IMG/VR virus record: IMGVR_UViG_3300003877_000001
Location: 62,001-126,000 of that record
Reading direction: 5' to 3' (one strand)
Length of the DNA stretch: 64,000 nucleotides
Part shown: one piece after another, positions 47,235 to 63,966 of the stretch
How positions within the stretch are numbered: the stretch's first letter is position 1
How the letters are laid out: the number at the start of each line of letters is the position of its first letter
Position numbers and translations under genes: made by a program
The notes under the pieces: generated by a model
The model's input: the letters and a program-made list of their open reading frames with translations, nothing else
Told to the model about the DNA's origin: nothing
Databases searched by the model: none

Positions 47235-47264
47235 AAGACCCAATCCTAACAGATTGGGTTTTTT
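47235..47264 (+). terminator. intrinsic terminator of attenuator 2
   Basis: AAGACCCAATC-CTAACA-GATTGGGTTTT-TT. Confidence 0.9.
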
Positions 47265-47286: not shown

Positions 47287-47430
47287 ATGATAAGAGTTTA
47301 TATTGAAGATAAAGAAAAGGGTGTAGTATTTGCGTACATAAAAGATGTACCAGCAATTTGCAGCCAAGGTAAAACAAAAGAAGAAGTCGATAAAAAGATT
47401 GATAAGTATTTTGAAGTGATTAAAAAGTAA
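47287..47430 (+). CDS. orphan HicB-family antitoxin-like protein (47 aa)
   Basis: MIRVYIEDKEKGVVFAYIKDVPAICSQGKTKEEVDKKIDKYFEVIKK matches the HicB N-terminal pattern (P...SQG.T.EE). Confidence 0.7.
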   Translation: MIRVYIEDKEKGVVFAYIKDVPAICSQGKTKEEVDKKIDKYFEVIKK

Positions 47431-47432
47431 AT

Positions 47433-47502
47433 GGGTCTGATGCTAAAGGCAGGTCGTTGGTTTTGCATACCAAACGTTTCGGTTCGATTCCGACAGTATC
47501 CA
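47433..47502 (+). tRNA. tRNA-Ala(UGC), irregular acceptor stem
   Basis: TTGGT-TTTGCAT-ACCAA; G3.U70. Confidence 0.7.
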
Positions 47503-47637
47503 CAATAAAGTTATTTGACGTATTGTTTATTAAAAAATTATTTGTGAAGAGAGAGCAGAGACTCTTGACGGCAGCACTATAATGGTGGCTTCGAACAAAT
47601 ACATGTCGTGTGTATTGTCCGTGATAAGCAAATATAT

Positions 47638-47709
47638 GGGGAGTTAGTATAATGGCTATTATTATTGACTTGCACTCAATGGATAAGGGTTCGACTCCCT
47701 TACTCTCCA
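47638..47709 (+). tRNA. tRNA-Ala(UGC)
   Basis: ATTGA-CTTGCAC-TCAAT; G3.U70, A73. Confidence 0.93.
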
Positions 47710-47711
47710 CT

Positions 47712-47883
47712 AATGTTGAAAGGAAGCGGTTGTTTATAGACTATCGACAGCATAAGATTAGTATCGGCTTTATGTGTAATATGACGACTCTAACATGGTC
47801 TGGCTTTTCCAACATCATATATTGAAACCGTACTCGTACTGTTAGATTACACCAATATGTGAAAGAACTATAAACTCAACATT
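47712..47883 (+). ncRNA. rod-like structured RNA candidate
   Basis: Nested pairings AATGTTGA/TCAACATT, GTTTATAG/CTATAAAC, GTGTAAT/ATTACAC, TCTAACA/TGTTAGA. Confidence 0.6.
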
Positions 47884-47888
47884 TATTT

Positions 47889-47960
47889 GCTCGGTTCGTC
47901 TAACGGTTAGGACGGGTGGTTTTCAGCCATCAGATAGGGGTTCGATTCCCCTACCGAGTA
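47889..47960 (+). tRNA. tRNA-Glu(UUC)
   Basis: GGTGG-TTTTCAG-CCATC. Confidence 0.92.
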
Positions 47961-48011
47961 CTTTTGGTCGTTTTTGTACCTTTGTAATATTTATAATTAA
48001 ACATTGTAAAT

Positions 48012-48656
48012 ATGGCAAGAAAACAAAAGAAATATCATTATTTGTATAAGACAACAAATAATTTAAACGGTAAATACTATTATGGTATGCATAGTACTGA
48101 TGATTTAAATGATGGTTATTATGGTTCAGGTAAAAGATTAAGATATTCGATTAATAAATATGGTAAAGAAAATCATAGTGTTGAAGTATTAGAGTTCTTT
48201 GAAAATAGAATTGATTTAAAAAATAAAGAAAAGGAGATTATTAATTTAAATGAAATTGCCAAAAAAGATTGTATGAATTTAGTTGTTGGTGGTGGTGGTG
48301 GATTAATAGGATTATCTGAAGACAAAAGAGAAAATATTCGTAATGGTGCATCTAAATTTTTAAAAGAAAAATGGAAAGACCCTTCATATAGAAAAATGCA
48401 AATAAAACTTTCTTCGGAAAGAATAAAAAAAACACATAAAGAAGGAAAACTTAAATATAATAATTTTAAAAATAAATATCATAATGAAGAAAGTAAAAGA
48501 AAAATGAGTGAATCTAGCAAGGGAATGGGAAAAGGGAAAAGTAACTCCCAATATGGAACATGTTGGATAACAAAAAATGATGTTAATAAAAAAATTAAAT
48601 TATTTGATTTAAATGACTATATAAAAAACGATTGGATTAAAGGTCGTATAATATAA
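48012..48656 (+). CDS. GIY-YIG (Seg-like) homing endonuclease with NUMOD3
   Basis: YLYKTTN..NGKYYYGMH..DGYYGSG; HNEESKRKMSES. Confidence 0.9.
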   Translation: MARKQKKYHYLYKTTNNLNGKYYYGMHSTDDLNDGYYGSGKRLRYSINKYGKENHSVEVLEFFENRIDLKNKEKEIINLNEIAKKDCMNLVVGGGGGLIGLSEDKRENIRNGASKFLKEKWKDPSYRKMQIKLSSERIKKTHKEGKLKYNNFKNKYHNEESKRKMSESSKGMGKGKSNSQYGTCWITKNDVNKKIKLFDLNDYIKNDWIKGRII

Positions 48657-48663
48657 ATTTTGA

Positions 48664-48727
48664 TCCTTACCTTTGGTTTGGATTCTACAAAGGTTTTCAA
48701 CGTTGAACCCGTTAATCAACGTTGTTT
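48664..48727 (+). repeat. double-hairpin spacer element, copy 1
   Basis: TACCTT..GGT.TGGATT...AAAGGTTTTCAACGTTGAACC...TCAACGTTGTTT. Confidence 0.85.
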
Positions 48728-48729
48728 AT

Positions 48730-48805
48730 GATCGGTTCGTCTAATGGAACTAGGATAGGTGGGGTCAAAAGCCACCAGATAGAGGTTTAAATCCTTTACC
48801 GATTA
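48730..48805 (+). tRNA. tRNA-Glu-like paralog with aberrant 9-nt anticodon loop
   Basis: Body similar to tRNA at 47889; GGTGG-GGTCAAAAG-CCACC; T loop TTTAAAT. Confidence 0.6.
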
Positions 48806-48806
48806 C

Positions 48807-48940
48807 TATGAATTGTTAGTGGTGGAACAGGTATACACTATCACCGTTGAAGGTGGTTTGTAGGGGTTATAGAAAACCCCTGCTGCATGGTAACATGTGG
48901 GACATCCCTTGTAGGTTCGAGTCCTACCTAGTGGTTCATA
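48807..48940 (+). ncRNA. enlarged tRNA-like RNA (Ser/Leu-type D arm, two extra hairpins)
   Basis: 13-bp terminal stem, GTGGAACAGGTATACAC, GTAGG-TTCGAGT-CCTAC. Confidence 0.75.
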
Positions 48941-48946
48941 ATTTAT

Positions 48947-49019
48947 TGGGTGTTCGTCTAGTGGCAAAGGCATCTGTTTTACATGCAGAATATCGTGGGT
49001 TCGAGTCCCACACACCCAA
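48947..49019 (+). tRNA. tRNA-Val(UAC)
   Basis: TCTGT-TTTACAT-GCAGA. Confidence 0.92.
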
Positions 49020-49023
49020 CTGG

Positions 49024-49088
49024 TCTTTACCTTATGGTCTGGATTTAAAAAAGGTTTTCAACGTTGAACCAGATATCAACGTTGTTTT
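49024..49088 (+). repeat. double-hairpin spacer element, copy 2
   Basis: Near-identical to 48664-48727. Confidence 0.85.
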
Positions 49089-49092
49089 ATAT

Positions 49093-49165
49093 TCGCTCTT
49101 GGTGATCAACGGTAACATAGCAGTCTCCAAAACTGAAGATGAAAGTTCAAATCTTTCAGGGCGAG
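49093..49165 (+). tRNA. tRNA-Trp(CCA)
   Basis: GCAGT-CTCCAAA-ACTGA; G73. Confidence 0.88.
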
Positions 49166-49199
49166 CAAAGTAGTTGAAAATCAACTAGTTATAACATAA

Positions 49200-49270
49200 C
49201 GTCCATTGGTGTAATGATAACATGATCGGTTGTCTCCCGATTGCCGAGGGTTTGATTCCCTCATGGACGG
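49200..49270 (+). tRNA. tRNA-Asp(GUC)
   Basis: ATCGG-TTGTCTC-CCGAT; G73; pyrimidine at position 37. Confidence 0.8.
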
Positions 49271-49272
49271 CA

Positions 49273-49671
49273 AAATTTTGTAGTCGTTCTTGTGTTGGTA
49301 AATATAGAGCAAATAAAGTAAAAAAATCAAATAAAGTTAGACGAAGTAAAAATGAAATCTATTTTGCGGATTTATGTATAGAATATTTTAAAAATGTTGA
49401 AACTAATGAAAAAATTTTTAATGGATGGGATGCTGATGTTATTATTCACGATATTAAAATAGCAATTTTATGGAATGGTAAATGGCATTATGAAAAAATA
49501 ATCAAAAATCATTCAGTAAAACAAGTACAAAATAGGGATAGATTGAAATTAATTGAAATTAAAAATTATGGATATGAACCGTACATAATAAAAGATATGG
49601 GTTCATATAATAAAAAGTTTGTTGAAGAACAATTCAAAGAATTTATAAATGCCGATGTCGCCAAGTGGTAA
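49273..49671 (+). pseudogene. Vsr-like endonuclease, 5' end missing
   Basis: FCSRSC, SKNEI.F, WDADVII...AILWNG.WHY, RD..K; the listed start lies inside tRNA-Asp. Confidence 0.6.
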
Positions 49672-49722
49672 GGCACATTTCTCATAAGAATGTATACGAG
49701 TGTTCGATTCACTCCATCGGTA
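49651..49722 (+). tRNA. tRNA-Met(CAU) (elongator, or Ile2)
   Basis: CATTT-CTCATAA-GAATG. Confidence 0.88.
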
Positions 49723-49740
49723 CAAAATTTTTAAATAAAT

Positions 49741-49766
49741 TGTAACCTTTTAAAAAAGTTTACGTA
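49741..49766 (+). promoter_or_regulatory. ECF-sigma-like promoter TGTAACC-N15-CGTA
   Basis: Identical copy at 50223; variants at 46577, 54617, 63075 (+) and 15510, 44035 (-). Confidence 0.65.
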
Positions 49767-49776
49767 TTATAAATAT

Positions 49777-50220
49777 ATGGTTGATAAAGAAATATGTAGA
49801 TTTAAATATGAAGATATTGAATATCAAATAAGCCATTTAATATTTCAATATGGTAATATTAAAATTTCAATGCCTAGTATATTAATTACAACCAAATCTT
49901 CTAATAGTAAAAGAAGTACATATGTAAGTAAAACTGATGGACATTATAACTTAGTTGGATTGAATAACCCAATTAAATTAATTAGAAAAATTAGTAATAT
50001 TTACAATGATGAACTTAAATCTTTTGATTATGTTTGTTTTAGTGCACATACAGATGCAACAGATAAATGTACTGAAGTATATGGTGGCATTCTTAATAAA
50101 ATGGGATTTGTTAAATTATTAAATAATAAATATTATCATTTTTATAGTAGAAAAGATAAAAAACTAAAACGTAAAGAAGTTGTTAAAATTTTTAAAGATT
50201 TTGAAATTTATTTACATTAA
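49777..50220 (+). CDS. hypothetical protein
   Basis: ORF flanked by direct repeats of the promoter motif. Confidence 0.55.
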   Translation: MVDKEICRFKYEDIEYQISHLIFQYGNIKISMPSILITTKSSNSKRSTYVSKTDGHYNLVGLNNPIKLIRKISNIYNDELKSFDYVCFSAHTDATDKCTEVYGGILNKMGFVKLLNNKYYHFYSRKDKKLKRKEVVKIFKDFEIYLH

Positions 50221-50264
50221 TATGTAACCTTTTAAAAAAGTTTACGTATATTTGAAATATAAAC

Positions 50265-50336
50265 GGAGCATTGGTCTAACGGCTAGGATATATGACTATC
50301 ACTCATAGGGTAGGGGTTCGATTCCCCTATGTTCCG
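50265..50336 (+). tRNA. tRNA-Asp(AUC)
   Basis: TATGA-CTATCAC-TCATA; GGAGCAT/ATGTTCC stem, G73. Confidence 0.88.
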
Positions 50337-50346
50337 CACTGGTCAT

Positions 50347-50465
50347 TAAAGTATGGTGTAATGTGCACGATACTTCCATGTACCGACCAACGATAGCCTA
50401 TTAGTATGGTGACAATAGGTTGGCAACAGAAGTAAAGGATTAAGGTTAAATTCCTTATTACTTGA
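50347..50465 (+). ncRNA. tRNA-like RNA with extended anticodon arm
   Basis: D arm TGGTGTAATGTGCAC, TACTTC/GAAGTA enclosing about 50 nt, T arm TAAGG-TTAAATT-CCTTA. Confidence 0.55.
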
Positions 50466-50481
50466 AGACCTAAAAAAATAT

Positions 50482-50621
50482 GCTGTAATGGAATGAAGTG
50501 AAAACGATAAAGTATAATGCATTGAAATATCGTGGAAACTATTAGTCACTAGCGATAATTGGCATTAATCATTTAACATAGGGGTAATTTCCTATTATGG
50601 GTTCGAGTCCCCAATATGGCA
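50482..50621 (+). ncRNA. enlarged tRNA-like RNA
   Basis: GCTGTA/TATGGC ends; GGG-TTCGAGT-CCC T arm. Confidence 0.55.
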
Positions 50622-50706
50622 CAAAATTATGGTATGATGGAATTGGTATACATGTGGGTGTGACCTTCGAAAGAATAGGTGCAGATCAAACGGATATGTT
50701 AACAAA

Positions 50707-50808
50707 TGAAGTAAAAGGGTTAAATGATGATTTAAATGTCTTGGCTTAAAATAGTTTCAATATTTAAATATGTAGTTTATCGTTAAGGTTCAATTCCTTA
50801 TACTTCAC
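50707..50808 (+). ncRNA. enlarged tRNA-like RNA
   Basis: TGAAGTA/TACTTCA ends; TAAGG-TTCAATT-CCTTA; ATTTAAAT long arm. Confidence 0.6.
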
Positions 50809-50909
50809 AAAAGTCTGGCAGAAGTATGCGATAGGTACGACAATACCGATAGCAGAAAATGAAGGACACATTGAACTCGAAGCATTGTCGTGTGGAGATA
50901 GTAAATGTT

Positions 50910-50981
50910 TAACTAGTGGACAAGTGGTAAAGTCGCCCCTTTTAAATGGGGAGAACGTGGGTTCGAATCCTACCTAGTTAA
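50910..50981 (+). tRNA. tRNA with UAA-containing loop, short variable region (identity uncertain)
   Basis: TAACTAG/CTAGTTA; CCCC-TTTTAAAT-GGGG; GTGGG-TTCGAAT-CCTAC. Confidence 0.7.
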
Positions 50982-51209
50982 CTAAACTTCTGTGATGTGG
51001 AAGAATTGAAGTTCATGTTTGTTTAATATTTGGGTCGCTCCTGAATACTGACAATAAAGAATAGTTTATATTTGAGGTGAGTACGTATTAACCGATATAT
51101 GAAGTTACTATTTTGAATGAACGCACTTCGCACTCGTCAAAGGGAGAGAAAGCAGGTTCGATACCTGTCTACGCTACAAATATTATATCAAACGGATATA
51201 ATTTAAAAT

Positions 51210-51364
51210 TAACTAATGGCAGAGTGGCTTAATGCGGATGTCTAGTTCTATATGATTGATAGAGGGTGAACTTCTTTATCTTTTGCTCATGAACGGAAAC
51301 AATTACCCTGATTACGAGAAGCAAATATCGAAAGGGGTCATAGGTTCGAATCCTATTTAGTTAG
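51210..51364 (+). ncRNA. enlarged tRNA-like RNA with insertion in the anticodon loop
   Basis: TAACTAA/TTAGTTA; TGGCAGAGTGGCTTAATGC; GATGT/ATATC; ATAGG-TTCGAAT-CCTAT. Confidence 0.78.
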
Positions 51365-51397
51365 CAATATTATATCAAACGGATATAATGAAAATAT

Positions 51398-51616
51398 GAG
51401 GATGTGGTGGAAAGGTAAACACGCTTGTTTTAGAATAAGTACAAAGTTCATTTGGGAATAAATAATACTGATGAAGAGATGAATACCATAATGCTTACTG
51501 CTTAGTTGAACCAAGTTACCCTTCGGGATATGTCGGTAAAATAGAAATCGAAATCTAAATGATAGTAGAGGTAAGAGAGAAAGTCTGGTTTGAGGGTTCG
51601 AGTCCTTCCATCTTCA
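51398..51616 (+). ncRNA. 219-nt tRNA-Leu(UAG)-like RNA with giant variable region
   Basis: GAGGATG/CATCTTC+A; TGGTGGAAAGGTAAACAC; CTTG-TTTTAGAA-TAAG; GAGGG-TTCGAGT-CCTTC. Confidence 0.78.
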
Positions 51617-51655
51617 CTAAATTATATCAAACGGATATAATAAAAATTGAAATAT

Positions 51656-52009
51656 GGGGGTAACAGGAATTGACAGGATACGATAGGTAGACGGTGCAAG
51701 TATGAGGAAATTGCTCTACTCATTAAAAATAGGTAATGAACGTTTAAGTGGCGAAGCACTTGCAATGGCAGCATAACCGAAAGGTTTTTGTACCATTCGA
51801 GATACCACCAACTAGGTAGGTGTTCTCATAGATACTGATCACGTAAAGAGATCAAAAAATGTTGTGGAACATAAAACCAAAAAGTCTAATGTAATAAAGT
51901 GTTTGTAAATAAAAAACATAATGACTTAAAAATAATAAACAAACTAAACTTGTGAATGACTTTTTATTTGTAATATAACTGGACAGGAGTTCAAGTCTCC
52001 TTACTTCCA
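51656..52009 (+). ncRNA. ssrA: tmRNA, tag (A)GEALAMAA
   Basis: GGGGGTA..GGAATTGAC 5' end; tag ORF 51750-51776; TAAACTTGTGAA; GGAC-AGGAG-TTCAAGT-CTCCT-TACTTCC-A with G3.U70. Confidence 0.95.
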
Positions 52010-52015
52010 CAATAT

Positions 52016-52112
52016 GGTGATCTATTGGTATCTACACGCCTTTCATCGGGAAGTAGAAGGATAACTTTAATGATGAATATGAGTTATATTGGTTCGAATC
52101 CCCTGATCGCCA
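52016..52112 (+). ncRNA. non-canonical tRNA-like RNA
   Basis: GGTGATC/GATCGCC+A; GG-TTCGAAT-CC; two internal hairpins. Confidence 0.55.
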
Positions 52113-52130
52113 CTTAAATAAAAAACTAAT

Positions 52131-52544
52131 ATGGATATTGAAAAGTTTAAAAGGGATATGAAAGAAGATATGGAAAATCCTGATGGTTTCTTTGCTAGAT
52201 TGGCAAAAAAAAATGCTAATCTTGAGAAAAGATATAATAAATTTGAAAAATGGTTAGAAACAAACGAGTTTGAACCTATTTTCCAAAAATTGCTAGAAAA
52301 AAATGGTGATGAAAGAAGTACATATTGTTTTAATAAAGGACATGAAAAAAATGGTACACCTTTAATGGAATTTCTTTGTGGCTATATAACTACTAGAATT
52401 GAAACTGTTGAAAATGAAAAATTTAGTGGTGATTTTAGTTCTGGTATTTGGTTTTTTAAAGATTATTGGTTTCAATTAATTTGTGGTCAAGGATGTTTTT
52501 GGAAAATATATAATAAAGATTTTGAATGTATTGAACACGTATAG
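52131..52544 (+). CDS. hypothetical protein
   Basis: ORF track; ..GQG.F.. motif. Confidence 0.6.
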   Translation: MDIEKFKRDMKEDMENPDGFFARLAKKNANLEKRYNKFEKWLETNEFEPIFQKLLEKNGDERSTYCFNKGHEKNGTPLMEFLCGYITTRIETVENEKFSGDFSSGIWFFKDYWFQLICGQGCFWKIYNKDFECIEHV

Positions 52545-52613
52545 TGGAGCAATACTTGAAATGGTTAGAAGCCTTAAATGAAAATAGAGAATTAAGAATA
52601 AGATTAAATAAAG

Positions 52614-52811
52614 ATGTTTAATATAGGTTTTTTAATTGATAGATATTGGTGGGATATTAAACATAATAAACCACATAATTCTTTAATTGAAGGAGATACC
52701 TCTACAACAACTAACTTAGGATATTTTAAATTAGTAGATGATGAATATAAATTAACAGAGGAAGGTATTAAAAGTTATAAAAAAATGAGAAGAAATAATG
52801 AGAAAGAATAA
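52614..52811 (+). CDS. hypothetical protein
   Basis: ORF track. Confidence 0.4.
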   Translation: MFNIGFLIDRYWWDIKHNKPHNSLIEGDTSTTTNLGYFKLVDDEYKLTEEGIKSYKKMRRNNEKE

Positions 52812-52855
52812 AATACATAGTGAACGATTATCCACCACTGAAGCAGATTTAAGAT

Positions 52856-52930
52856 GCCAGCGTGGTGGACGTGGGAATACACGACATTTTTAAGCGATGT
52901 TTTTCGAGGGTTCGAGTCCCTCCGTTGGTA
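52856..52930 (+). tRNA. tRNA-Leu(UAA) with short variable loop
   Basis: GCCAGCG/CGTTGGT+A; ACATT-TTTAAGC-GATGT; variable loop TTTTC. Confidence 0.82.
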
Positions 52931-52981
52931 CTAATTTATTTTCGAATAGGCACACATAAAAAAATAAATCTAAAAAAGAAA

Positions 52982-53239
52982 ATGAGTGCAATAAACAACA
53001 GGGAGTATCCTAAATGTATATTTTGTGGAAAATTTTGCTTTAAACATAAAAGAAAATATTGTTCAAGAGATTGTTATAATAAAGACATGGAATTAAATAT
53101 TCCTAAAGTACCTGAATTATTAAAAATGTTTAAAAAATATAAAACATTTGTTAGGGTTGGGAAAGAATTTAATGTAAGTGATAATGCTGTTAGAAAATGG
53201 TGTATTAAATATGGTATATTAGAAATGATTAATAAATAA
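52982..53239 (+). CDS. Zn-finger/HTH protein (homing endonuclease remnant)
   Basis: CIFCG..YCSRDC; VGKEFNVSDNAVRKW; start re-called to MSAIN because the listed start lies in a tRNA. Confidence 0.55.
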   Translation: MSAINNREYPKCIFCGKFCFKHKRKYCSRDCYNKDMELNIPKVPELLKMFKKYKTFVRVGKEFNVSDNAVRKWCIKYGILEMINK

Positions 53240-53245
53240 TATAAA

Positions 53246-53509
53246 ATGAATAAAACAGAAATAAAGAAAGCATTATATAAGCAAAAGCCAAAGGCTGAAT
53301 TTACACATATTAGAAGAGGTATTGCTTATTATAATACAATATTAAGAATAGAAGAAGAACCATATAGTCATTCAGTATTTTTTGAAATACCTGTTGATGA
53401 TATGGGTGATGCAGACTTTGATAAGCAAATGGATGCAAAATTACTTAATCGTTGGATTGTTGATATACTCATTTTAACAAAAAAAGAAGGTGATTTAAAA
53501 ATGCCCTAA
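53246..53509 (+). CDS. conserved phage hypothetical protein
   Basis: EIKKALYKQKPKA...F.IP..DMGDA.F...M.AKLL.RW. Confidence 0.65.
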   Translation: MNKTEIKKALYKQKPKAEFTHIRRGIAYYNTILRIEEEPYSHSVFFEIPVDDMGDADFDKQMDAKLLNRWIVDILILTKKEGDLKMP

Positions 53510-53587
53510 TGGTGAAAAGGTAGACACGGCAGGTTCAAACCCTGTTGCTAATAAACTGGCGTGTAGGTTCGAATCCTACTTAGGGTA
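53503..53587 (+). tRNA. tRNA-Leu(CAA)
   Basis: GCAGG-TTCAAAC-CCTGT; long variable arm; A73. Confidence 0.93.
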
Positions 53588-53588
53588 C

Positions 53589-53906
53589 ATGAATGGAAAA
53601 GATGATATTGTTGGTGCAAAATTTGCTTTAGTTAAAGAAGGTGATTTAGTTGTTCATATGAGTAGGGAATCTTATGATGATTTAATGCATGAAGTTATTG
53701 AAGAGTTAAGAAAACAAATTATGATTAAAGTAAAAGAAGTTACAAAGTATATGGATGGTGGAACAACTAAATATATTGATGAAAAAGGTAATGAATATTT
53801 TAAAGACAATAGATTAGGTACAAAAACTAAAGGTAAAATTTTTGATAAATATCCTAAAGAAGAAGATGCTAAAATATTAGATGTTGAACTTGAAATATTA
53901 TTGTGA
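53589..53906 (+). CDS. hypothetical protein
   Basis: ORF track; DGGT motif. Confidence 0.5.
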   Translation: MNGKDDIVGAKFALVKEGDLVVHMSRESYDDLMHEVIEELRKQIMIKVKEVTKYMDGGTTKYIDEKGNEYFKDNRLGTKTKGKIFDKYPKEEDAKILDVELEILL

Positions 53907-54096
53907 TGAACAAAGACATTTAGTGTGTGTTCCTTATTCAAAAGAGAACCTACATTTGATGGCTGATGATTTAAACATCAAAAGATGTTGGTTTCATAAA
54001 GATCATTATGATATACCTAAAAGAAGAATAAAAGAAATAAGTGCAAAGTGCACAATAATTAATAGTAAAGAAATAGTTAAAATAATAAGAAAATGA
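53881..54096 (+). CDS. DUF4031-like protein
   Basis: HL....LH.MA..L.IKR.WF...HYDI. Confidence 0.65.
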   Translation: MLNLKYYCDEQRHLVCVPYSKENLHLMADDLNIKRCWFHKDHYDIPKRRIKEISAKCTIINSKEIVKIIRK

Positions 54097-54186
54097 ACAG
54101 AATTAACAACATATTTGAAAGTGAACAAGAGATTAATTCTGCTCTAGTGATATAGTATAACGGTCACCGAGCAGACGTAAAACTAT

Positions 54187-54261
54187 GCTCGGTTGGACAA
54201 CGGTAGGTTAAGTCACCACCCTTTCAAGGTGGTATAACGGGTTCGACCCCCGTACCGAGTA
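54187..54261 (+). tRNA. tRNA-Glu(UUC)
   Basis: CCACC-CTTTCAA-GGTGG. Confidence 0.93.
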
Positions 54262-54500
54262 CAAAAATAATAAATTTAAAGAGTCATATTGATTAGTGGG
54301 TTGGGTTTGATTTCGACTGTTACTCTGATCAGGGGTGTTATTAGCGGTTTAAAACGTGAACACATTTGTAAGTATTTGGTAGGTAAGTTCGACTCTTGCT
54401 ACTTATTAACAACACTAATTAATTTAACTTTTAAAATATGATTAGTTATCATATAAAAATATACTTAACTATTAACATATTGGTAGTTATAATGAAATAT

Positions 54501-54586
54501 TGTGAGTTGGAGAAGTTGGTATCTCGCTGGTTTCATAAGCCAGAGTCCCTACGGGGTTTACGGGGGTTCGAATCCCTCACTCGCTA
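54501..54586 (+). tRNA. initiator-like tRNA(CAU) with extra variable hairpin
   Basis: 1:72 mismatch; CTGGT-TTCATAA-GCCAG; variable CCC-TACG-GGG. Confidence 0.85.
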
Positions 54587-54817
54587 CTAAAAAGAATTAA
54601 AAATAAATAAGAAAATTGTAACATATTAAAAATATTTACGTATATTTGTAATATAACAGACAACAAAAGTTCCTATAATTTATATTTGGATAAAAAATAC
54701 TTTTCGTCTGTTTTTTTATAAATTAAAACATAAAGGTAAATGATGTTCCTATAAAACTCAATAGGGGAAACCCTATTTTTACTGTAAATACATCTCACCT
54801 TTTTAAAAAATTAAATT

Positions 54818-56572
54818 ATGAAAACTTTAGAACTATTTAATGCGGTTGTAAAAAAAGATACAAAAGATAATGTTTTTGTATCAGAAGATGGATATATTAT
54901 CGAATCTGGTGCTTTATGGGCAAAAGATAGAATTGTAACCTATTATAATAGTCGTAGATTAAATGGTAATGATTTAAATAAAACATTTCATAAATCATGG
55001 TTAAAAATAAAAAATAGTTCAAGATATGAACTATTGGTTGATCAAATAAAACATTATATATCTACATATGGTAGTGGATTTAAAGATGATGTTTATATCC
55101 CTGATGAAGTATTAGATATTTCAGGATTAAAAATATCATTTAAAGTTGTTAAAGCATATACTAAAGATGAATTAATTGATAAATCATTATCATTACTTCA
55201 ATCTGGTATTGCTTTGAAAGAAGAAACAATAAATGATTTATTATCAATTCTTGTAGATGAACTTGATTATGAATTTACTGGTAAAGAAAATATTCGTAAC
55301 AAAGAAGCAATAATTAAAATTGCAGATATATATGGGGTATTACCAATAGATACTATGGAGTTTTTTAGATATATTATCTATCGTACAACAGGACAATCAT
55401 TATTAATTAAAAATTATAAAATGATTGAATTGATAAAAGATAGTAATTATAATCCATCTGCACAATTTAAGAAATTTGGATTAGAAAAACTTTCTGAAAT
55501 ATTTAATAGATTTAAGCCGTTATTTTTAGCTTTTAAACCTAAATGTAGTGGTACTATTAATAGAATTTCAAAGTTATCTAAAAAATATCATAAGCCACTT
55601 CTTAGTAATCCATTAAATGAAGTAACTTCGGTTACATTTAATGAAGGTGATGATCACTGGTTAGATAATGCAACACCATTTGCTTTATTTAAAGCATTGT
55701 CTGCTTGTTGGACAAGAATGAATGGACAAGATGCTTTTGTATATAGAATTAGAAATGGTAAATCATTTGCTAAGATGAATTCTACTGATGCAGGTATTGC
55801 AGGATATAATTATGGACATATTCTTAATTATATTAAAAATAGATTTGATCTTTCAGGTAAGAAAATATTTCTTCCAGAAGATGTAGAATATGCTTTACCA
55901 ACATCTGAAAAGATGTACGTAGGTAATGTTCCAACAGGAACAAGATTCTATGGTAATGCTCTTGCTGTTGGTATTTATTGGAAAAACTCTTGGGGTGCAA
56001 CTGACCTTGATTTATCTGGTTTGAATATCGGTGGAAAAGTCGGTTGGAATTCAGATTATAAACAAGGTGGATCATTGTATTTCTCTGGTGATATTACCAA
56101 CGCACCTAATGGTGCTGTTGAGTATCTTTATGCAAATAGAGGACTTAGTGAACCAACTTTGGTAATGAATAATGTATTTAGTGGAAACCCTGATTCAGAA
56201 TTCAAGATCATCGTAGGTAAAGGTGATAATATCAATAAGAATTATATGATGAACCCTGAAAAGTTGTTCGTGGATATTAAGACACAATCAGTTCAAACTC
56301 AAAGTGTGTTAGGTATATTTCTTCCAGTTGGTAACGAGAGACAATCTTTTGTTATTTTGAACTTCGGTTCTGGTAGAGAACATATTTCTAGTTATGGTGA
56401 AGTTGCAAATATAACAACAAAGGCACTTTATCAACAATGGAACAATGCACTTACTTTGAGAGAAGTAATTGGAAAATTAGGTGTTGAATTTGTTACTGAT
56501 CCTGAAAAGGCAGATAATGATTTAAGTTTAAATACAATTGAAAAAGATTCTATAATGAATCTTTTTATATAA
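54818..56572 (+). CDS. stress-related protein with C-terminal TerD-like motifs
   Basis: GIYW....DLDLS...GWN....FSGDITNAP.GA.EY. Confidence 0.6.
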   Translation: MKTLELFNAVVKKDTKDNVFVSEDGYIIESGALWAKDRIVTYYNSRRLNGNDLNKTFHKSWLKIKNSSRYELLVDQIKHYISTYGSGFKDDVYIPDEVLDISGLKISFKVVKAYTKDELIDKSLSLLQSGIALKEETINDLLSILVDELDYEFTGKENIRNKEAIIKIADIYGVLPIDTMEFFRYIIYRTTGQSLLIKNYKMIELIKDSNYNPSAQFKKFGLEKLSEIFNRFKPLFLAFKPKCSGTINRISKLSKKYHKPLLSNPLNEVTSVTFNEGDDHWLDNATPFALFKALSACWTRMNGQDAFVYRIRNGKSFAKMNSTDAGIAGYNYGHILNYIKNRFDLSGKKIFLPEDVEYALPTSEKMYVGNVPTGTRFYGNALAVGIYWKNSWGATDLDLSGLNIGGKVGWNSDYKQGGSLYFSGDITNAPNGAVEYLYANRGLSEPTLVMNNVFSGNPDSEFKIIVGKGDNINKNYMMNPEKLFVDIKTQSVQTQSVLGIFLPVGNERQSFVILNFGSGREHISSYGEVANITTKALYQQWNNALTLREVIGKLGVEFVTDPEKADNDLSLNTIEKDSIMNLFI

Positions 56573-56719
56573 ATATTAAAGACGATTAGTAACACGTTGG
56601 CTTCGTGTTGAAATTGTGGGATAACGTGCCTGATAGCTGAAAAGCAAAAAGAACCACCCACTGAAAGGAAAGTTCGCAACTAAACCTGCTTTTCTAGTTT
56701 GAAACGTAAACTAGTATAT

Positions 56720-56803
56720 CGTGAGTTGGAGAAGTGGCATCTCGCTGTCCTCATAAGGTAGAGTCCCTACGGGTTTACGAAGGTTCGAGTCCTTCACTCG
56801 CTA
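56720..56803 (+). tRNA. initiator-like tRNA(CAU) with extra variable hairpin, copy 2
   Basis: C1:U72; CTGTC-CTCATAA-GGTAG; variable CCC-TACG-GG. Confidence 0.85.
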
Positions 56804-57460
56804 CTAAACTATAAGAATATGAAAAATAACATACCGCTTGGAAGCGGAATACATGTTAAATACTGTTACAGGTTCGTTGAGAACTTCACGTTTTTCTATC
56901 TCGTTAATCGAACAAGGTTAATCACCTTTTGCGGATCACGAATAGAATTTATCGGTGATTCCTCTCCCCCTTTATAGTCAAGATACTAATTATACTTGTG
57001 GATGTGCATGTATTAGAATGATATTAAATCATTTTTATGCACGATCCATTTAGAGGTGCTAAATCAAATTTCCAAATAAAGAAGTTTCTTAGAAATAATT
57101 GGAACATTAATCATAAAAAATATAATGTATCAGATAGTTATTATTCCGATTTAGTATTTGATCCAAAGATGGATAGAAAACGTTATTGGTTAGCATATAA
57201 GAAGGGGGATTAATTCTTCTTTCTTTTTAAAAATTTTTAAACTATATTTGTATTATGAGAAGTTTTGATTAAAGCAAAAAAATAATGGATAATACAATTG
57301 GAATATTTTTAATAACAAAGTTGTGAAAGTATGGTTGAAATTGATGGTTAAAAACCATTTCCAGAAGTAGATAAATTTAAATGGGTTGATTTTGATGATG
57401 CATTAGAATTAATTCATGATACACAAGTAATAGCATTAAATGAATATATAAGAAAATAAA

Positions 57461-58108
57461 ATGAAAATATTATTAATTAGTGATAGTCATGGACTACACA
57501 AAGCATGGGAAAAAATCTTCCCCCTCCCTAAAGTTGATATGATAATTCATGCAGGTGATCTAACTAATGTAGGTGCAATTCATGAAATGAATGAATTTAT
57601 GTTTTGGTTTAAGAATCTTGATATTGAATATAAAATAATGATTGCAGGAAATCACGATAAAGGTCTTGATAATTTTAACAGATATACTATGCTTGATATG
57701 ATTCAAGATAGTGAAATCCATTATCTTGAAGATTCTGGAGTAGAGATTGAAGGAATTAAGTTTTGGGGTTCACCTATGACACCACCATTTTTCAATTGGG
57801 CATTTATGCGTGACGAAGAACAAATCAAAAAGCATTGGGATGCAATTCCTGATGATACTGATTTTCTAATCACTCACGGTCCTGCCAATGGTATTTTGGA
57901 TTGGGTTGATTATAAAAATGGTGGAAGTGTAGGGTGTCCTTATCTTCTTGAAACAATTCAAGAAAGAGTGAAGCCTAAATATCATGTATTTGGTCATATA
58001 CATGAGATGTATGGGACTAGAGTAGTTGGTGAGACTACACATATATGTGCATCTGTTTTAGATGGTAGATATCATCCTGTTAGATCAGGCATTATAATTA
58101 ATTTCTGA
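57461..58108 (+). CDS. calcineurin-like metallophosphoesterase
   Basis: SDSH, HAGD, AGNHD, THGP, FGHIHE. Confidence 0.93.
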   Translation: MKILLISDSHGLHKAWEKIFPLPKVDMIIHAGDLTNVGAIHEMNEFMFWFKNLDIEYKIMIAGNHDKGLDNFNRYTMLDMIQDSEIHYLEDSGVEIEGIKFWGSPMTPPFFNWAFMRDEEQIKKHWDAIPDDTDFLITHGPANGILDWVDYKNGGSVGCPYLLETIQERVKPKYHVFGHIHEMYGTRVVGETTHICASVLDGRYHPVRSGIIINF

Positions 58109-58148
58109 ATCTCTTGCAATTGTCAGGAGATTTATGTATTTTTGAATT

Positions 58149-58418
58149 ATGGTAATAGAAAATAACAAAAAAGAAATAAAATTTTTAAAATCACTAGGTT
58201 TTAAAAAAGATGGTTTTGATGATAATTTAGGGGTTTGGTATACAAAAAAAATTAAACATTTCGTTCTAGGTAAATGCCTAATAGATGTCCAAGATTTTCA
58301 AAATAAAGCAATGATTAATATTGATACTATGGACGATAATCAAAATTATGTTACTATAACAGAAAACATACCATATAATAGAGAAAATCTTTTAATGGTA
58401 ATTGGGTTTTTAACATGA
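58149..58418 (+). CDS. hypothetical protein
   Basis: ORF track. Confidence 0.5.
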   Translation: MVIENNKKEIKFLKSLGFKKDGFDDNLGVWYTKKIKHFVLGKCLIDVQDFQNKAMINIDTMDDNQNYVTITENIPYNRENLLMVIGFLT

Positions 58419-58447
58419 GTAAATTTTTAAAAGATAAAGGATGATAT

Positions 58448-58948
58448 ATGTCATTATTATTAAGACATAAACCAGAGAAAGAAGATTTAAATCTTGATTC
58501 TCAAGGTTATGTCTTAGTTGATGAATTAATAAATAAACTTGAAATCACAATTACTGATCTCAAGTGGATTATCGATAATAATGATAAAAAAAGATTTAGT
58601 TTTAATGCTGATGAAACAATGATACGTGCAGCACAAGGACATTCTATTGATGTTGATCTTAAAATGAAAAGAATATTACCACCAGATTTATTATATCATG
58701 GTACTACAATAGCTAATGCTGAAAAAATACATAAGAGTGGTTTAAATAAAATGAATAGAAATCATGTTCATTTAACAGATAATAGAGAAACTGCATATTC
58801 GGTAGGAATGAGATATGCCAAATATCAAAATAAAATTTGGATGATTACTATTGATGCAAAACAATTGAATAAAGATGGTTATGAATTTTATAAATCTGAA
58901 AATGGAATATATTTAACAGAAGAAGTACCTTCAAAATATTTTATTTAA
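58448..58948 (+). CDS. kptA: RNA 2'-phosphotransferase (Tpt1/KptA)
   Basis: LLRH.P, DKKRF, IRAAQGHS, LYHGT, RNHVHL. Confidence 0.93.
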   Translation: MSLLLRHKPEKEDLNLDSQGYVLVDELINKLEITITDLKWIIDNNDKKRFSFNADETMIRAAQGHSIDVDLKMKRILPPDLLYHGTTIANAEKIHKSGLNKMNRNHVHLTDNRETAYSVGMRYAKYQNKIWMITIDAKQLNKDGYEFYKSENGIYLTEEVPSKYFI

Positions 58949-59202
58949 TCTACAATGACAATAGGATATAAATACTTTCTATTAACTCGACCAAAGACCA
59001 TACTATCATTTCTAACTTTAGTATCCCTAATTAATATACCTTCGATAATTGAAATACGATCAATATAAACAATAATACGATGATCACCATCATCATAATA
59101 CCATGCAGAATTAATTGGATATTTATTTGTTTTCTTTAATGTAACACATGAATATGGTAATAATAATAATAATAAAAATAATATGTATTTTTTTAGTTTC
59201 AT
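58945..59202 (-). CDS. putative lipoprotein
   Basis: Signal peptide with lipobox-like YSC. Confidence 0.55.
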   Translation of the reverse strand: MKLKKYILFLLLLLLPYSCVTLKKTNKYPINSAWYYDDGDHRIIVYIDRISIIEGILIRDTKVRNDSMVFGRVNRKYLYPIVIVD

Positions 59203-59292
59203 AAGTTTAGATTATATAAAAATAAATACTTATTTTTCTTATGTAAAATTTTATAAAATGATAAAAAAATATATAATAAAATATAGAATAAA

Positions 59293-60327
59293 ATGATTAA
59301 TAAATCAGAAATCTTTAAAAACAAATCACATTGGGTGAATATGACAGAAATTGAATTATTATCATATCAAACAAAAATTTTTAAATACTATTGTGAGAAT
59401 GGATTTCCATATTATCCAACGGATGATGAATATCGTAAAAGGGAATTTAATAAACTTCAAAAATATAATTATTCTGAATTAATTGAAAATGGAATTGTTA
59501 AACAAACAATGCATGGTCTTGGTCTTGCATGGTCATACTTTCCACACTCATTTGATGTTAAATGTAATAATAAAAAAACACCCATAGAAGTATTTAATAA
59601 TGATGATTTTTTTATGGAAGTGATTAGTAAACGATTACAAATAGGAACATTTATTTCAGATGCTGGAATTCGAAAAATGTTAAAAATGTTTACCAATACA
59701 CAAGGTGTTTCTAATTTTAGACCAACAGCAGCAGCAGCAATATATGATAAATATGCAGCTAATGGTGTTGTATGGGATATGTCTGGTGGTTGGGGAGGTA
59801 GAATGCTTGGTGCTGCGATAAGTAGCGTTAAGAAATATATTACAACTGAACCATCAATAAAAACATTTCTTGGATTGGTTGATTTATCTAAATTAATATC
59901 AAAAGTTGGTGTTAATATGGAATTTGTTTTATCAGCACAAGGTAGTGAAATATTTATACCTGAAAAAAATTCATTAAATTTATGTTTTACATCTCCACCA
60001 TATTTTGATTTAGAAAAATATTCGGATGAAGATAGTCAAAGCTATATTAAATATAGTAATAAACAAGATTGGGTTAGTGGTTTTTTAAAAAACACTTTTA
60101 ATAATTGTTATTACGGTTTAAAAAATAATGGACACATGTTAATTAATATTGCTGACTCAAAGAAAAATAACAATATTTCACTAGAACAAGCAACTATCGA
60201 TACAGCAATTAGTTGTGGATTTAAACATGTTGACACATTAAAATTGGCATTATCAAATCCAAACATGAAAAATAGAACATCAGCATTTAAATATGAACCA
60301 ATATTTGTTTTTAAGAAATATGAGTAA
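59293..60327 (+). CDS. DNA methyltransferase (N4-C/N6-A type)
   Basis: D.SGGWGGR, FTSPPYFDLE.Y. Confidence 0.85.
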   Translation: MINKSEIFKNKSHWVNMTEIELLSYQTKIFKYYCENGFPYYPTDDEYRKREFNKLQKYNYSELIENGIVKQTMHGLGLAWSYFPHSFDVKCNNKKTPIEVFNNDDFFMEVISKRLQIGTFISDAGIRKMLKMFTNTQGVSNFRPTAAAAIYDKYAANGVVWDMSGGWGGRMLGAAISSVKKYITTEPSIKTFLGLVDLSKLISKVGVNMEFVLSAQGSEIFIPEKNSLNLCFTSPPYFDLEKYSDEDSQSYIKYSNKQDWVSGFLKNTFNNCYYGLKNNGHMLINIADSKKNNNISLEQATIDTAISCGFKHVDTLKLALSNPNMKNRTSAFKYEPIFVFKKYE

Positions 60328-60406
60328 ACACAATATTGGTACTGCGCATCAACATTATAGAGGAATTGAAAACAAATAACCTAACTATTTAAAGTAAATA
60401 AAATAA

Positions 60407-60901
60407 ATGAAAAAACATATTCTTAATGAAAGAATAAGAGGCTCTGAAATTAGATTAGTAGGACATCAAATTTATGAAAATAATATTATACCAACTGCCG
60501 AAGCATTAAATTTAGCAAATACAGAAGGGTTAGACTTGGTATTAATAAATCCAAACGAGTCACCTGCTATTTGTAAGATTATGGATTATAATAAATTCAC
60601 ATATAATCAAAAAAAGAATGAAAAGAAAAGTAGTTCTCCAAAACTAAAAGAAATAAAATTTACTCCAAATATTACTGACAATGATTTGAATGTAAAAGTA
60701 AAACAAGCTAGAAAATTTCTTGAAAAGGGAAGTGTAATTAACATACATGTATTCTTTAAAGGAAGAGAAATTGCACATAAAGATAGAGGTAAGGAAGTAT
60801 TATTTAAATTCTTAAACGAACTTATAGATATTGGTATATTTAATTTGGATATAGTCTTTAAAGGAAAAAGAATTATCCACCAAATAAGACCTAAAAGATA
60901 G
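60407..60901 (+). CDS. infC: translation initiation factor IF-3
   Basis: NE.IR..EIRLV, GLDLV.I.P...P..CKIMDY.KF, KEIKF.P.I...D, F.GRE. Confidence 0.95.
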   Translation: MKKHILNERIRGSEIRLVGHQIYENNIIPTAEALNLANTEGLDLVLINPNESPAICKIMDYNKFTYNQKKNEKKSSSPKLKEIKFTPNITDNDLNVKVKQARKFLEKGSVINIHVFFKGREIAHKDRGKEVLFKFLNELIDIGIFNLDIVFKGKRIIHQIRPKR

Positions 60902-60954
60902 TAACCATTTTATAATATTTTTAATTTGAAAGAGTATTTATAGGTGATAATGAT

Positions 60955-61590
60955 TTGAAATTAATTGAAATGGTTCAAAAATGGTTGGAATATGATGGTA
61001 AAATATATCACAAAAAAACAACACATGAATTAGCACATTCAATCACTATTACATCAAAAAATATGGTTACAAAATTAAATGAACATAATGTAACCCCAAA
61101 CAAAAGTTTTACGTATAAATATAATAACATTGCATTGTTTAATGAATTTTTACAGGGTTATGTTGAGGGTGATGGTTGTGTTGGAATATATAATAGTTCA
61201 ACAACTGACTATTATTATATTAGTTTTTTTGGTAATGAAGATTTTAAAGATAGTATTATAAATTTATTACCTACAAAACCTAAACTAAGAAAAGTTAATA
61301 ATAAATTTTATGAAATTAAATTTTTGGGTAAAATAGGAATTGAATTTAGTGATTGGTTATAGAATGACCCAATATATATTGATAGTCCTAAATATAAAAA
61401 ATATATTGACTTTAAAAAAAATTATTTAACTAAGACAAAATATTATAAATATGGTTTATTAAATAGAAAAATAGATAATTTATTAAATGAAAATGTAGAA
61501 CCAAAAATTATAGCAGAAAAACTTAATATTAATAAAAGGACTGTATATAATTATAAATATAATAAGAAAAATGGAAAAAATACTTACTAA
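60955..61590 (+). pseudogene. degenerate LAGLIDADG endonuclease
   Basis: FLQGYVEGDG; the frame continues past TAG at 61360 into an HTH-like tail. Confidence 0.6.
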
Positions 61591-62668
61591 AATAGAATGG
61601 AGTGTTATTAATGAATATATTGAAAAGGGTTTATTAATTACTAATAAACACCCAACTAAAGATATATGGGTTCTAAATTATTCTAAAACATGTGCATTTG
61701 AAAAGGAATGGGATTTAATTACATTATCTTGTCGTGGACTTTTTGTTGACATCGATGGTAATATTGTTGGTCGAAGCATGAAAAAATTCTTCAATTTAGA
61801 AGAACACGATCCTTCTGATATTCCAACTGATTTATCATTTGAAGCATTTGAAAAAATGGATGGTTCATTGGGTATTTTATTTAATTATGAAGGTGATTGG
61901 ATATTTGCTTCAAGAGGTTCATTTGAATCAGAACAAGCCATTAAAGGTGGTGAAATCATGCTTAATATTGAAAATTCTTATAGATTTTTAAATGGTGATA
62001 ATACATATGTATTTGAAATTATATATCCTGAAAATCGTATTGTTATTGATTATGGTAAGACTGAAGATTTGGTTCTTTTAGGTGTTATCAATACTGATGG
62101 TGGTGATGAAATGTCATATGATGATATGGTGTATAATCACTCTGATGAATTTACTATTGTTGAAAAGTATGATGTAACATCTGATATTTCTAAATTAAAG
62201 GAATTAGAAGAAGATAACAAAGAAGGATTTGTTGTACGTTATTCTAATGGCTTCCGTGTAAAAGTAAAATTCGATGAATATTGCAGATTACATAGAATCG
62301 TTACTAACGTATCTAATAAGACAATTTGGGAATCATTGAAAAATGGTGAAGGATTGGATGAAGTTATTGATAGAGTTCCTGATGAATTCTACAATTGGGT
62401 TAGACGTACTGAAAAGGGTTTAAATGATATGTATATTGAAATTGAAGTTGAAACATTACGTGAATTCGTTAGGGTAACTAATTTAGTTAGTTTGAAAAAT
62501 GGATTTGATCCTTTTGAAAGAAAGAAAGAATTTGCTTTAATAGCAAAAGAATTTAAACATTCTGGATTATTATTTTCTATGTATAATAATAAAAATTATT
62601 CTGAAGCAATTTGGAAAATGATTAAACCAGACTGGTCAACACCATTTAGAGATGGGTATGAAAATTAG
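61571..62668 (+). CDS. RNA ligase (T4 Rnl1-like)
   Basis: CRG, KFFN, EKMDGS, FE, EGFVV, RVKVK..Y..LH. Confidence 0.92.
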   Translation: MEKILTKIEWSVINEYIEKGLLITNKHPTKDIWVLNYSKTCAFEKEWDLITLSCRGLFVDIDGNIVGRSMKKFFNLEEHDPSDIPTDLSFEAFEKMDGSLGILFNYEGDWIFASRGSFESEQAIKGGEIMLNIENSYRFLNGDNTYVFEIIYPENRIVIDYGKTEDLVLLGVINTDGGDEMSYDDMVYNHSDEFTIVEKYDVTSDISKLKELEEDNKEGFVVRYSNGFRVKVKFDEYCRLHRIVTNVSNKTIWESLKNGEGLDEVIDRVPDEFYNWVRRTEKGLNDMYIEIEVETLREFVRVTNLVSLKNGFDPFERKKEFALIAKEFKHSGLLFSMYNNKNYSEAIWKMIKPDWSTPFRDGYEN

Positions 62669-62760: not shown

Positions 62761-63069
62761 ATGGAACTAACAGAATACACTATATATAAACATAATAATA
62801 AAGCATATTTGAGATTTGAAAGTACTGAAAGATTTTTATGGTTCTTCAAAAAACAAGTATATAGATTTATACCAAGAAAGCATCTCTACAATAGTAAGGG
62901 AAAGAAAATCCGTAAGTGGACGATACATATGTTCCCAACTGAAATGAGTACATATTATGAGCATTTATTAGTGTGTGGGAATAAAAATGAAAGAGAAAAA
63001 TTTATTGAAAAATACCCACATATTCAACTATATTTAAACGAATTAAACACTTTTATTAAATTTTATTAA
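62761..63069 (+). CDS. hypothetical protein
   Basis: ORF track. Confidence 0.45.
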   Translation: MELTEYTIYKHNNKAYLRFESTERFLWFFKKQVYRFIPRKHLYNSKGKKIRKWTIHMFPTEMSTYYEHLLVCGNKNEREKFIEKYPHIQLYLNELNTFIKFY

Positions 63070-63204
63070 AAATTTGTAACCTTTTTCTTGCATGTTACGT
63101 ATTTATAAACGATTTTTGTAAACAATTAATGAAAAAAGATATTATAATAAGTAAAAAAGACATAACTGGTGGTAGTGTAATACCACCAAAATAAATTAGA
63201 AATC

Positions 63205-63288
63205 ATGACAAAAGTTAATACATATAAGAAATATAAAAACTATCCAGATACTGGATCAGGTATTCTATGTACTAACTTTGGTGGCTAA
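63205..63288 (+). CDS. leader peptide MTKVNTYKKYKNYPDTGSGILCTNFGG
   Basis: 27 codons; AAT ACA TAT AAG AAA TAT AAA AAC TAT run; terminator then tRNA-Tyr. Confidence 0.82.
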   Translation: MTKVNTYKKYKNYPDTGSGILCTNFGG

Positions 63289-63310
63289 AGCCATAAAGTT
63301 TAAAATATAG

Positions 63311-63344
63311 AAACCCTGATTCAGAAATGAGTCAGGGTTTTTTT
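63311..63344 (+). terminator. intrinsic terminator of attenuator 3
   Basis: AAACCCTGATTCA-GAAA-TGAGTCAGGGTTT-TTTT. Confidence 0.92.
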
Positions 63345-63353
63345 ATGCCATAT

Positions 63354-63434
63354 TGTACGGTTGAACAGGTGGTGAGTTCCGCACACTGTAAATGTGCTGC
63401 TTCGGCTATGGGGGTTCGATTCCCTTCCGTACAA
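63354..63434 (+). tRNA. tRNA-Tyr(GUA)
   Basis: GCACA-CTGTAAA-TGTGC; variable hairpin GC-TTCG-GC; A73. Confidence 0.93.
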
Positions 63435-63618
63435 CAATTAACATTGTTAATTGAATTAGACTATATTAAAAAGTAATATAGTTCAAAAAACAATATTAAA
63501 ATTGTCATAGAATGGTACATGAAGGACTTATTGATAAAAATAATATAATTCCATTATCAGAATATTTACCTGATAATTGGAAAATTTATTATTATGGATA
63601 ATTTAAAATGATAAAATA

Positions 63619-63966
63619 ATGGTAAGGTTAAGTGAAATATTGCATGGAAGTGGTGTCTTTTCAAAAGACTTCAAAACTAGGATTGCCCAAAAGCAAATCA
63701 GAGTTAATGGAGAAACTATTGAAGGTGACATAGAGATTGACATAGATTTCATTCATAAGGATTTCTTTATGGATATTGGAGATTTAATGTTTAGCTTAAT
63801 GGATAGAGATATTTGGCAATTGCAGTTACAGATTTTCGGTATAGAAAATTTAGCAACATCAAATATTACCAATAGTTTAACTGAAGAATTAAGGAAGTTT
63901 CTAATGGTGAGAACTTCAAAGAAAAATGTTTTTGTAATTAAATTAAATGAAAAGCTGCTGAATTAG
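63619..63966 (+). CDS. hypothetical protein, possible S4-like RNA-binding N-terminus
   Basis: RLSEIL...G..S......I....IRVNG. Confidence 0.45.
   Translation: MVRLSEILHGSGVFSKDFKTRIAQKQIRVNGETIEGDIEIDIDFIHKDFFMDIGDLMFSLMDRDIWQLQLQIFGIENLATSNITNSLTEELRKFLMVRTSKKNVFVIKLNEKLLN

Follow-up and report, generated by a model that had tools for sequence, protein, structure and literature searches.

In ribosome-mediated attenuation, as known from the amino-acid biosynthesis operons (trp, his, leu, thr, ilv and pheA), a short leader ORF with a run of regulatory codons precedes an intrinsic terminator and an overlapping antiterminator, and the position of the ribosome decides which of the two structures is formed (PMC1183508, PMC3082878). 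Attenuation probably also acts on the translation apparatus itself, since the pheM leader of the E. coli pheST operon, encoding phenylalanyl-tRNA synthetase, would sense tRNA charging through cognate codons. In mycobacteria, short polycysteine ORFs act as Cys-responsive attenuators of downstream operonic protein genes (bioRxiv 10.1101/834739). T-box riboswitches perform a logically equivalent task without a ribosome or an ORF; they bind uncharged tRNA directly and switch a terminator/antiterminator in front of synthetase and amino-acid genes.

Here, we describe an element of this general design in front of phage tRNA genes. A 64,000-nt stretch of DNA (the window, positions 62001-126000 of the 325,854-bp viral contig IMGVR_UViG_3300003877_000001) carries a small Tyr/Lys-rich coding sequence and a terminator predicted to be switchable upstream of tRNA-Tyr and, beyond the end of the window, three tRNA-Lys genes. 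The arrangement is apparently such that these tRNAs are made only when ribosomes run short of them, although this reading rests on computation alone. The window is 27% G+C and contains about 21 tRNA genes next to phage-like translation and RNA-repair genes. The leaders lack Shine-Dalgarno sequences, TAnnTTTG boxes lie upstream of many related leaders (29 of 61, against 10 of 61 on the opposite strand), and the closest isolate hit is a Maribacter phage; together these point to a Bacteroidota host.

Anatomy of the Tyr/Lys element

The first-pass annotation had proposed a leader peptide, a 1:2 hairpin, a 2:3 antiterminator enclosing a stop-codon hairpin and a terminator in front of tRNA-Tyr, and all of these features are present (Table 1). 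The leader translates to MTKVNTYKKYKNYPDTGSGILCTNFGG, the first 13 codons of which hold 3 Tyr, 4 Lys, 2 Asn and 2 Thr. Six of 8 residues of the regulatory run are in {Y,K} (p=6e-4 against the leader background). Composition alone is only suggestive in such an AT-rich genome, as 4 of 471 short ORFs in the window (0.85%) reach the same density; it is rather position, structure and the comparative data that make the case. The leader stop codon lies 25 nt before the CCC core of the terminator 5′ arm, inside the 24-35 nt range seen in nearly all of the related loci.

Segments 2 and 3 pair as 9 bp, a 2x2 internal loop and 8 bp at -19.1 kcal/mol. The best duplex between the leader and segment 3 is -19.9 kcal/mol, against -7.9 +/- 2.2 in 1000 dinucleotide shuffles, none of which was as good. 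Nascent RNA up to segment 3 is predicted to fold into one long antiterminator hairpin (-33.8 kcal/mol) that encloses the stop-codon hairpin, and the region as a whole folds far better than shuffled sequences (z=-6.2). The terminator, AAACCCTGATTCA-GAAA-TGAGTCAGGGTTT followed by T7 (-15.8 kcal/mol for the CCC...GGG core), ends 9 nt before tRNA-Tyr. A simple terminator scan missed it, possibly because its A-rich 5′ flank can pair with the T tract, which would leave too few T in the tail for the rule of the scan. The 1:2 hairpin is real but looks minor; in the folding model, untranslated RNA also forms the antiterminator (P=0.73).

No Lys, Asn or Thr tRNA was found in the window by ARAGORN or Rfam, and the first-pass annotation had predicted all three beyond its end. 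This prediction is partly fulfilled. The sequence retrieved from the source contig (L001) extends 8.8 kb past the window, and tRNA-Lys(ctt), tRNA-Lys(ttt) and tRNA-Lys(ttt) lie 730-1170 nt past tRNA-Tyr. A 115-aa ORF and a 39-codon ORF occupy the intervening 730-nt stretch, where no terminator-like site and no TAnnTTTG was found, although an internal promoter cannot be excluded; the next plus-strand terminator is 2 kb further on. In contrast, no Asn or Thr tRNA lies in these 8.8 kb, even though an Asn codon (AAC) sits inside the run. Across leaders, N and T in residues 2-7 belong to a generic head, M-[K/R]-[T/N]-x-[N/T], and predict the downstream isotype in only 24 of 79 cases.

Upstream of the leader lies a promoter-like region, the function of which is inferred. 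The same TTTGTAACC-N14-TACGTATTTAT lies upstream of sister element A1 (see below) on the minus strand. The motif ACGTATTTA occurs 4 times in the window against 0.78 expected, and three of the four copies lie upstream of the three attenuators. A CGTATTTAT-plus-TAnnTTTG arrangement also lies upstream of the Tyr/Lys leaders in the unrelated contigs L044 and L065, and may represent a shared promoter or operator element. An extra ORF with a strong hairpin between promoter motif and leader remains unexplained; translational coupling or a timing device are possibilities. The Tyr/Lys relatives L019, L044 and L065 lack it. Pfam searches found nothing for the 115-aa and 102-aa ORFs flanking the element.

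Table 1. Positions of the features of the Tyr/Lys element, its sister elements and their surroundings (window coordinates unless a contig handle is given).
Feature	Position	Strand	Details
Promoter-like region	63073-63120	+	TTTGTAACC-N14-TACGTATTTAT followed by GATTTTTG, which resembles the Bacteroidota -7 box TAnnTTTG
Copies of motif ACGTATTTA	63097-63105 (+), 47041-47049 (+), 44013-44005 (-), 15489-15481 (-)
Extra ORF	63129-63194	+	21 codons (MKKDIIISKKDITGGSVIPPK); hairpin GGTGGTA-GTGTAA-TACCACC at 63166-63189; ends 10 nt before the leader ATG
Leader ORF	63205-63288	+	27 codons plus stop
Regulatory codon run	63223-63243	+	Y K K Y K N Y (TAT AAG AAA TAT AAA AAC TAT), codons 7-13
Hairpin 1:2	63242-63256	+	ATCCAG-ATA-CTGGAT; 3′ arm overlaps segment 2
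Segment 2	63252-63270	+	5′ strand of the antiterminator, inside leader codons 16-22
Stop-codon hairpin	63274-63300	+	carries the TAA stop codon
Segment 3	63305-63323	+	3′ strand of the antiterminator; overlaps the terminator 5′ arm
Intrinsic terminator (predicted)	63311-63344	+	13-bp stem, GAAA loop, T7
tRNA-Tyr(GUA)	63354-63435	+	ARAGORN; Rfam tRNA, 45.5 bits
115-aa ORF	63619-63966	+	unknown function, inside the putative transcription unit
Three tRNA-Lys genes	about 64164-64606 (window-equivalent)		beyond the window end
Sister A1 leader	43833-43750	-	MKRLVNIVGQPQPQHQHQMLNGENMSS; segment 2 at 43779-43766
Sister A1 terminator	43726-43693	-	followed by tRNA Pro, Pro, His, Gln, His and a Gln-like tRNA (43644-43094)
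Sister A2 leader	47090-47209	+	run MEAMLWSVAEAVEVDDL; segment 2 at 47179-47190
Sister A2 terminator	47234-47263	+	14 plus-strand tRNAs from 47638 to 56804
47-codon ORF and tRNA-like sequence	47288-47431 and 47436-47506	+	between the A2 terminator and the first called tRNA; GGTTCGATTCC T arm in the tRNA-like sequence, which neither ARAGORN nor Rfam called a tRNA
Three unusual tRNAs	43094-43164 (-); 50265-50337 (+); L001 3404-3487		one found by Rfam but not by ARAGORN, its anticodon loop read as Gln(TTG)-like; one tRNA-Asp with anticodon ATC; one 84-nt tRNA-Lys(ttt), unusually long for this isotype, possibly with a long variable arm
Rfam tRNA match across 219 nt	51398-51616	+	30.4 bits; suggests a tRNA gene interrupted by a large insertion or intron
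tmRNA-like gene	51656-52012	+	RF00023, 43 bits (gathering 47), E=1.4e-14
Translation and tRNA-repair genes	57461-62668	+	metallophosphoesterase, Tpt1/KptA RNA 2′-phosphotransferase, DNA methylase-like protein, IF3, T4-type RNA ligase
Loci in cellular genome assemblies	L137 5162-5320; L162 (minus strand) 3015-3145; L196 4244-4360		same design

Sister elements and related phage loci

The element is not isolated. Two sisters in the window mirror the tRNAs downstream of them. The A1 leader contains QPQPQHQHQ; eight of 8 residues are in {P,H,Q} (p=1e-7), and it is the only one of the 471 short ORFs to reach this. In A2, 16 of 17 residues of the run MEAMLWSVAEAVEVDDL are drawn from exactly the 7 isotypes of the 14 downstream tRNAs, which are all Ala, Glu, Leu, Val, Trp, Asp or Met (fifteen of 16 residues in the set, p=2.6e-6). 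Both have a segment 2 inside the leader, downstream of the run, that pairs with the terminator 5′ arm (-15.0 and -17.0 kcal/mol). The three leaders thus split the tRNAs of the window into {P,H,Q}, {A,E,L,V,W,D,M} and {Y,K}.

Blastn against isolate phages matched little more than the tRNA (plus 19 nt of upstream flank in Panino) and a ligase fragment, but it led to the Maribacter phage Panino (PP540027), which is cultured on Maribacter halichondriae and has at least three such elements. The leader MKTKGNTFSWFNYSN..., with the run FSWFNYSN, lies before Tyr, Ser, Ser, Asn, Trp, Phe; MKTQRLHQELEQP..., with QRLHQELEQP, lies before Pro, Glu, Gln, His, Leu, Leu, Arg; and MRAATGIAIIGRTKDK..., with AATGIAIIG..K.K, lies before Ala, Lys, Ile, Gly. 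Each case has a terminator, and the first two (and the operon containing the third) are preceded by a TATATTTG promoter box. Panino also carries a tmRNA inside its tRNA region. Other routes to relatives were less productive: relatives of the neighbouring RNA ligase (L005 and L006, 48% identity) have no tRNAs nearby and give no comparison, and a 21-mer from tRNA-Tyr found only the source contigs and an unrelated G+C-rich phage.

A content-blind scan of IMG/VR for GGGTTTTTT placed 45-75 nt before a tRNA T arm returned 118 loci, 100 of which have a tRNA array starting within 30 nt of the T tract. In 77 of these 100, an ORF stops 40-62 nt upstream, compared with 27 of 98 loci in the same scan of cellular genomes (Fisher 3e-12). 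Examples include KYYYGKKSYKK before Tyr, Tyr, Lys, Lys, Lys; PQPQQHPQ before Pro, His, Pro, His, Gln; WSSRRRSSSR before Ser x3, Arg x3, Trp; QQQQQ before Gln, Gln; and LLSLSLLLL before seven Leu. Five loci (three distinct leaders) carry Tyr/Lys arrays behind YYYGKKSYKK-type leaders. With leaders chosen by position only and made non-redundant (63), the match to the locus's own tRNA set sums to 105.9, whereas swapped sets give 11.8 +/- 4.6 (z=20, maximum 37.4 in 10,000 permutations). The match does not extend convincingly to the codon level, since the Leu, Arg and Ser codons of the leaders showed no significant preference for the boxes read by the phage anticodons (z=0.7) and only a marginal one by strict wobble (z=2.0). 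Suppressor-type tRNAs inside some of the arrays (anticodon cta in loci L040 and L104, tta in L064) hint at stop-codon recoding phages; no in-frame stop codon that could act as a sensor was seen in their leaders.

The cellular scan yielded only three clear matches, which suggest that the logic may reach beyond phages, unless the loci belong to prophages: an Acidobacteriota MAG with a CCCPCC leader before tRNA-Cys (L137), a Puia sp. with HQQRHLQPR before Pro, Gln, His, Arg, and a gammaproteobacterial MAG with NNNANNNHAN before tRNA-Asn, behind a promoter-like TTGACA ... TATAAT sequence. Overall, the device is a minority feature. In a small sample of viral tRNA arrays not selected for a terminator, about 3-4 convincing cases were found among 139 array starts (roughly 3%), all at 35-42% G+C, albeit with a strict detector.

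Proposed mechanism and alternative readings

The best explanation, which we hold with good confidence, is a ribosome-mediated transcription attenuator that controls a phage tRNA operon. Translation of the leader, termination at the hairpin, the polarity and the physiological signal are all inferred. In this model, transcription starts upstream and a ribosome translates the leader. If charged tRNA-Tyr or tRNA-Lys is scarce, the ribosome stalls in the regulatory run and segment 2 stays free to pair with segment 3 as soon as the latter is transcribed; the terminator 5′ arm is sequestered, RNA polymerase reads through, and the tRNAs are made. If these tRNAs are plentiful, the ribosome runs through segment 2 and the stop-codon hairpin while the terminator is being made, the antiterminator cannot form, and transcription stops before tRNA-Tyr. 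Because the products are the tRNAs that relieve the stall, the circuit is one of negative feedback on tRNA supply.

Comparative data support this geometry. Each leader pairs better with its own terminator 5′ arm than with the arms of other loci (z=-12.4 across 60 loci; own arm in the top 10% for 28 of 60), and the pairing segment lies downstream of the regulatory run in the clear-cut loci. This amounts to covariation: CCCTGATTCA with GGATCAGG in the element described here, and CCCGATTC with GAATCGGG in the Tyr/Lys relatives. When a ribosome footprint is masked and only RNA up to segment 3 is present, the modelled probability that the terminator 5′ arm is pre-sequestered is 0.71 with the A site on a regulatory codon and 0.34 four or more codons later (38 of 40 loci, Wilcoxon 2e-10). 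For this element, the values are about 0.72-0.81 at codons up to about 12 and 0.43-0.61 at codons 13-25. It is important to note that at equilibrium the terminator wins at almost every ribosome position, so that the switch must be kinetic, as in classical attenuators.

Among the alternatives, the one that survives best, though still unlikely, is that the switch gauges translation activity or transcription-translation coupling in general and times tRNA expression during infection, with codon identity being secondary. The antiterminator formed by untranslated RNA is in line with this, since loss of translation of any kind predicts readthrough, and the match at the codon/anticodon level is weak. 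However, leader residues track the isotype set of their own array across loci, and one genome carries three leaders with three disjoint residue sets that match three disjoint tRNA sets, which a general gauge would not need. It is very unlikely that an ordinary terminator of the upstream gene (62761-63069) happens to sit before a tRNA and that the short ORF is a chance product of AT-rich sequence. About 1% of short ORFs in the window do reach the same Y/K density, and terminators directly before tRNAs are common in cellular genomes and mostly lack such ORFs; nevertheless, the antiterminator complementarity, the stop-to-terminator spacing, the fulfilled Lys prediction, the two sisters and the 63 independent loci all speak against it. 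A reversed polarity, whereby stalling favours termination and the tRNAs are made only when already abundant, has no specific support and is very improbable given the position of segment 2 downstream of the run and the masked folding. Equally improbable is a pre-tRNA 5′ leader structure for processing or stability with an irrelevant ORF: readthrough transcripts would indeed carry a hairpin that must be removed, and tRNA-Lys(ctt) is preceded by a hairpin without a T tract, but a G+C-rich stem followed by T7 is the signature of an intrinsic terminator, and this reading explains neither the leader-tRNA match nor the antiterminator covariation.

More tentatively, phage tRNA arrays could be organised into regulons, each behind a composite leader that reads the charged pool of exactly those tRNAs. 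The main natural trigger would then be the loss of host tRNAs during infection, through host anticodon nucleases or other tRNA-targeting defences or through phage-induced host shut-off, and the attenuators would be on-demand counter-defence switches. The RNA ligase, Tpt1/KptA, metallophosphoesterase, IF3 and tmRNA-like genes next to the arrays fit this possibility.

Comparison with known regulatory systems

While tRNA genes are probably controlled mostly at the promoter, by growth rate and the stringent response, and phage tRNAs are usually discussed only in terms of codon usage or escape from tRNA-cleaving defences, a built-in sensor that makes a tRNA only when ribosomes wait for it would be a new regulatory logic for tRNA genes. 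It would explain why phage tRNAs are grouped as they are, and would allow the content of an array to be predicted from a 25-codon leader, as the Lys test showed. No description of leader-peptide attenuation of tRNA genes was found in the literature searched, although journals behind subscription lay outside it and earlier work cannot be excluded; the Panino genome paper (PMC11590407) does not mention it.

The element works like the trp, his, leu and pheA attenuators in its leader ORF, regulatory codons, terminator and overlapping antiterminator. What differs is that the regulated genes are tRNAs rather than enzymes, so that the product itself relieves the stall, that the leaders are composite, with 2 to 7 or more amino acids mirroring a whole tRNA array, and that the carriers are mainly phages. 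No strong 1:2 'superattenuation' state as in trp is predicted, although a 1:2 hairpin is present and its role is not settled. Compared with pheST, which probably responds to a single amino acid and controls a synthetase in a cellular genome, the target is again different. The mycobacterial polycysteine ORFs resemble the leaders, and in particular the CCCPCC leader of L137, in that short ORFs rich in one codon type act as sensors for downstream genes, but those ORFs are leaderless and their targets encode proteins. By sequence, the element belongs to no curated Rfam leader family; the best match is Thr_leader with 21.9 bits against a gathering score of 55 (E=0.68), covering only the terminator. 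T-box riboswitches likewise sense the state of a specific tRNA in front of translation-related genes, but they do so through a specifier loop and a conserved T-box sequence, and no Rfam T-box hit was obtained here at the gathering threshold or at E<=1.
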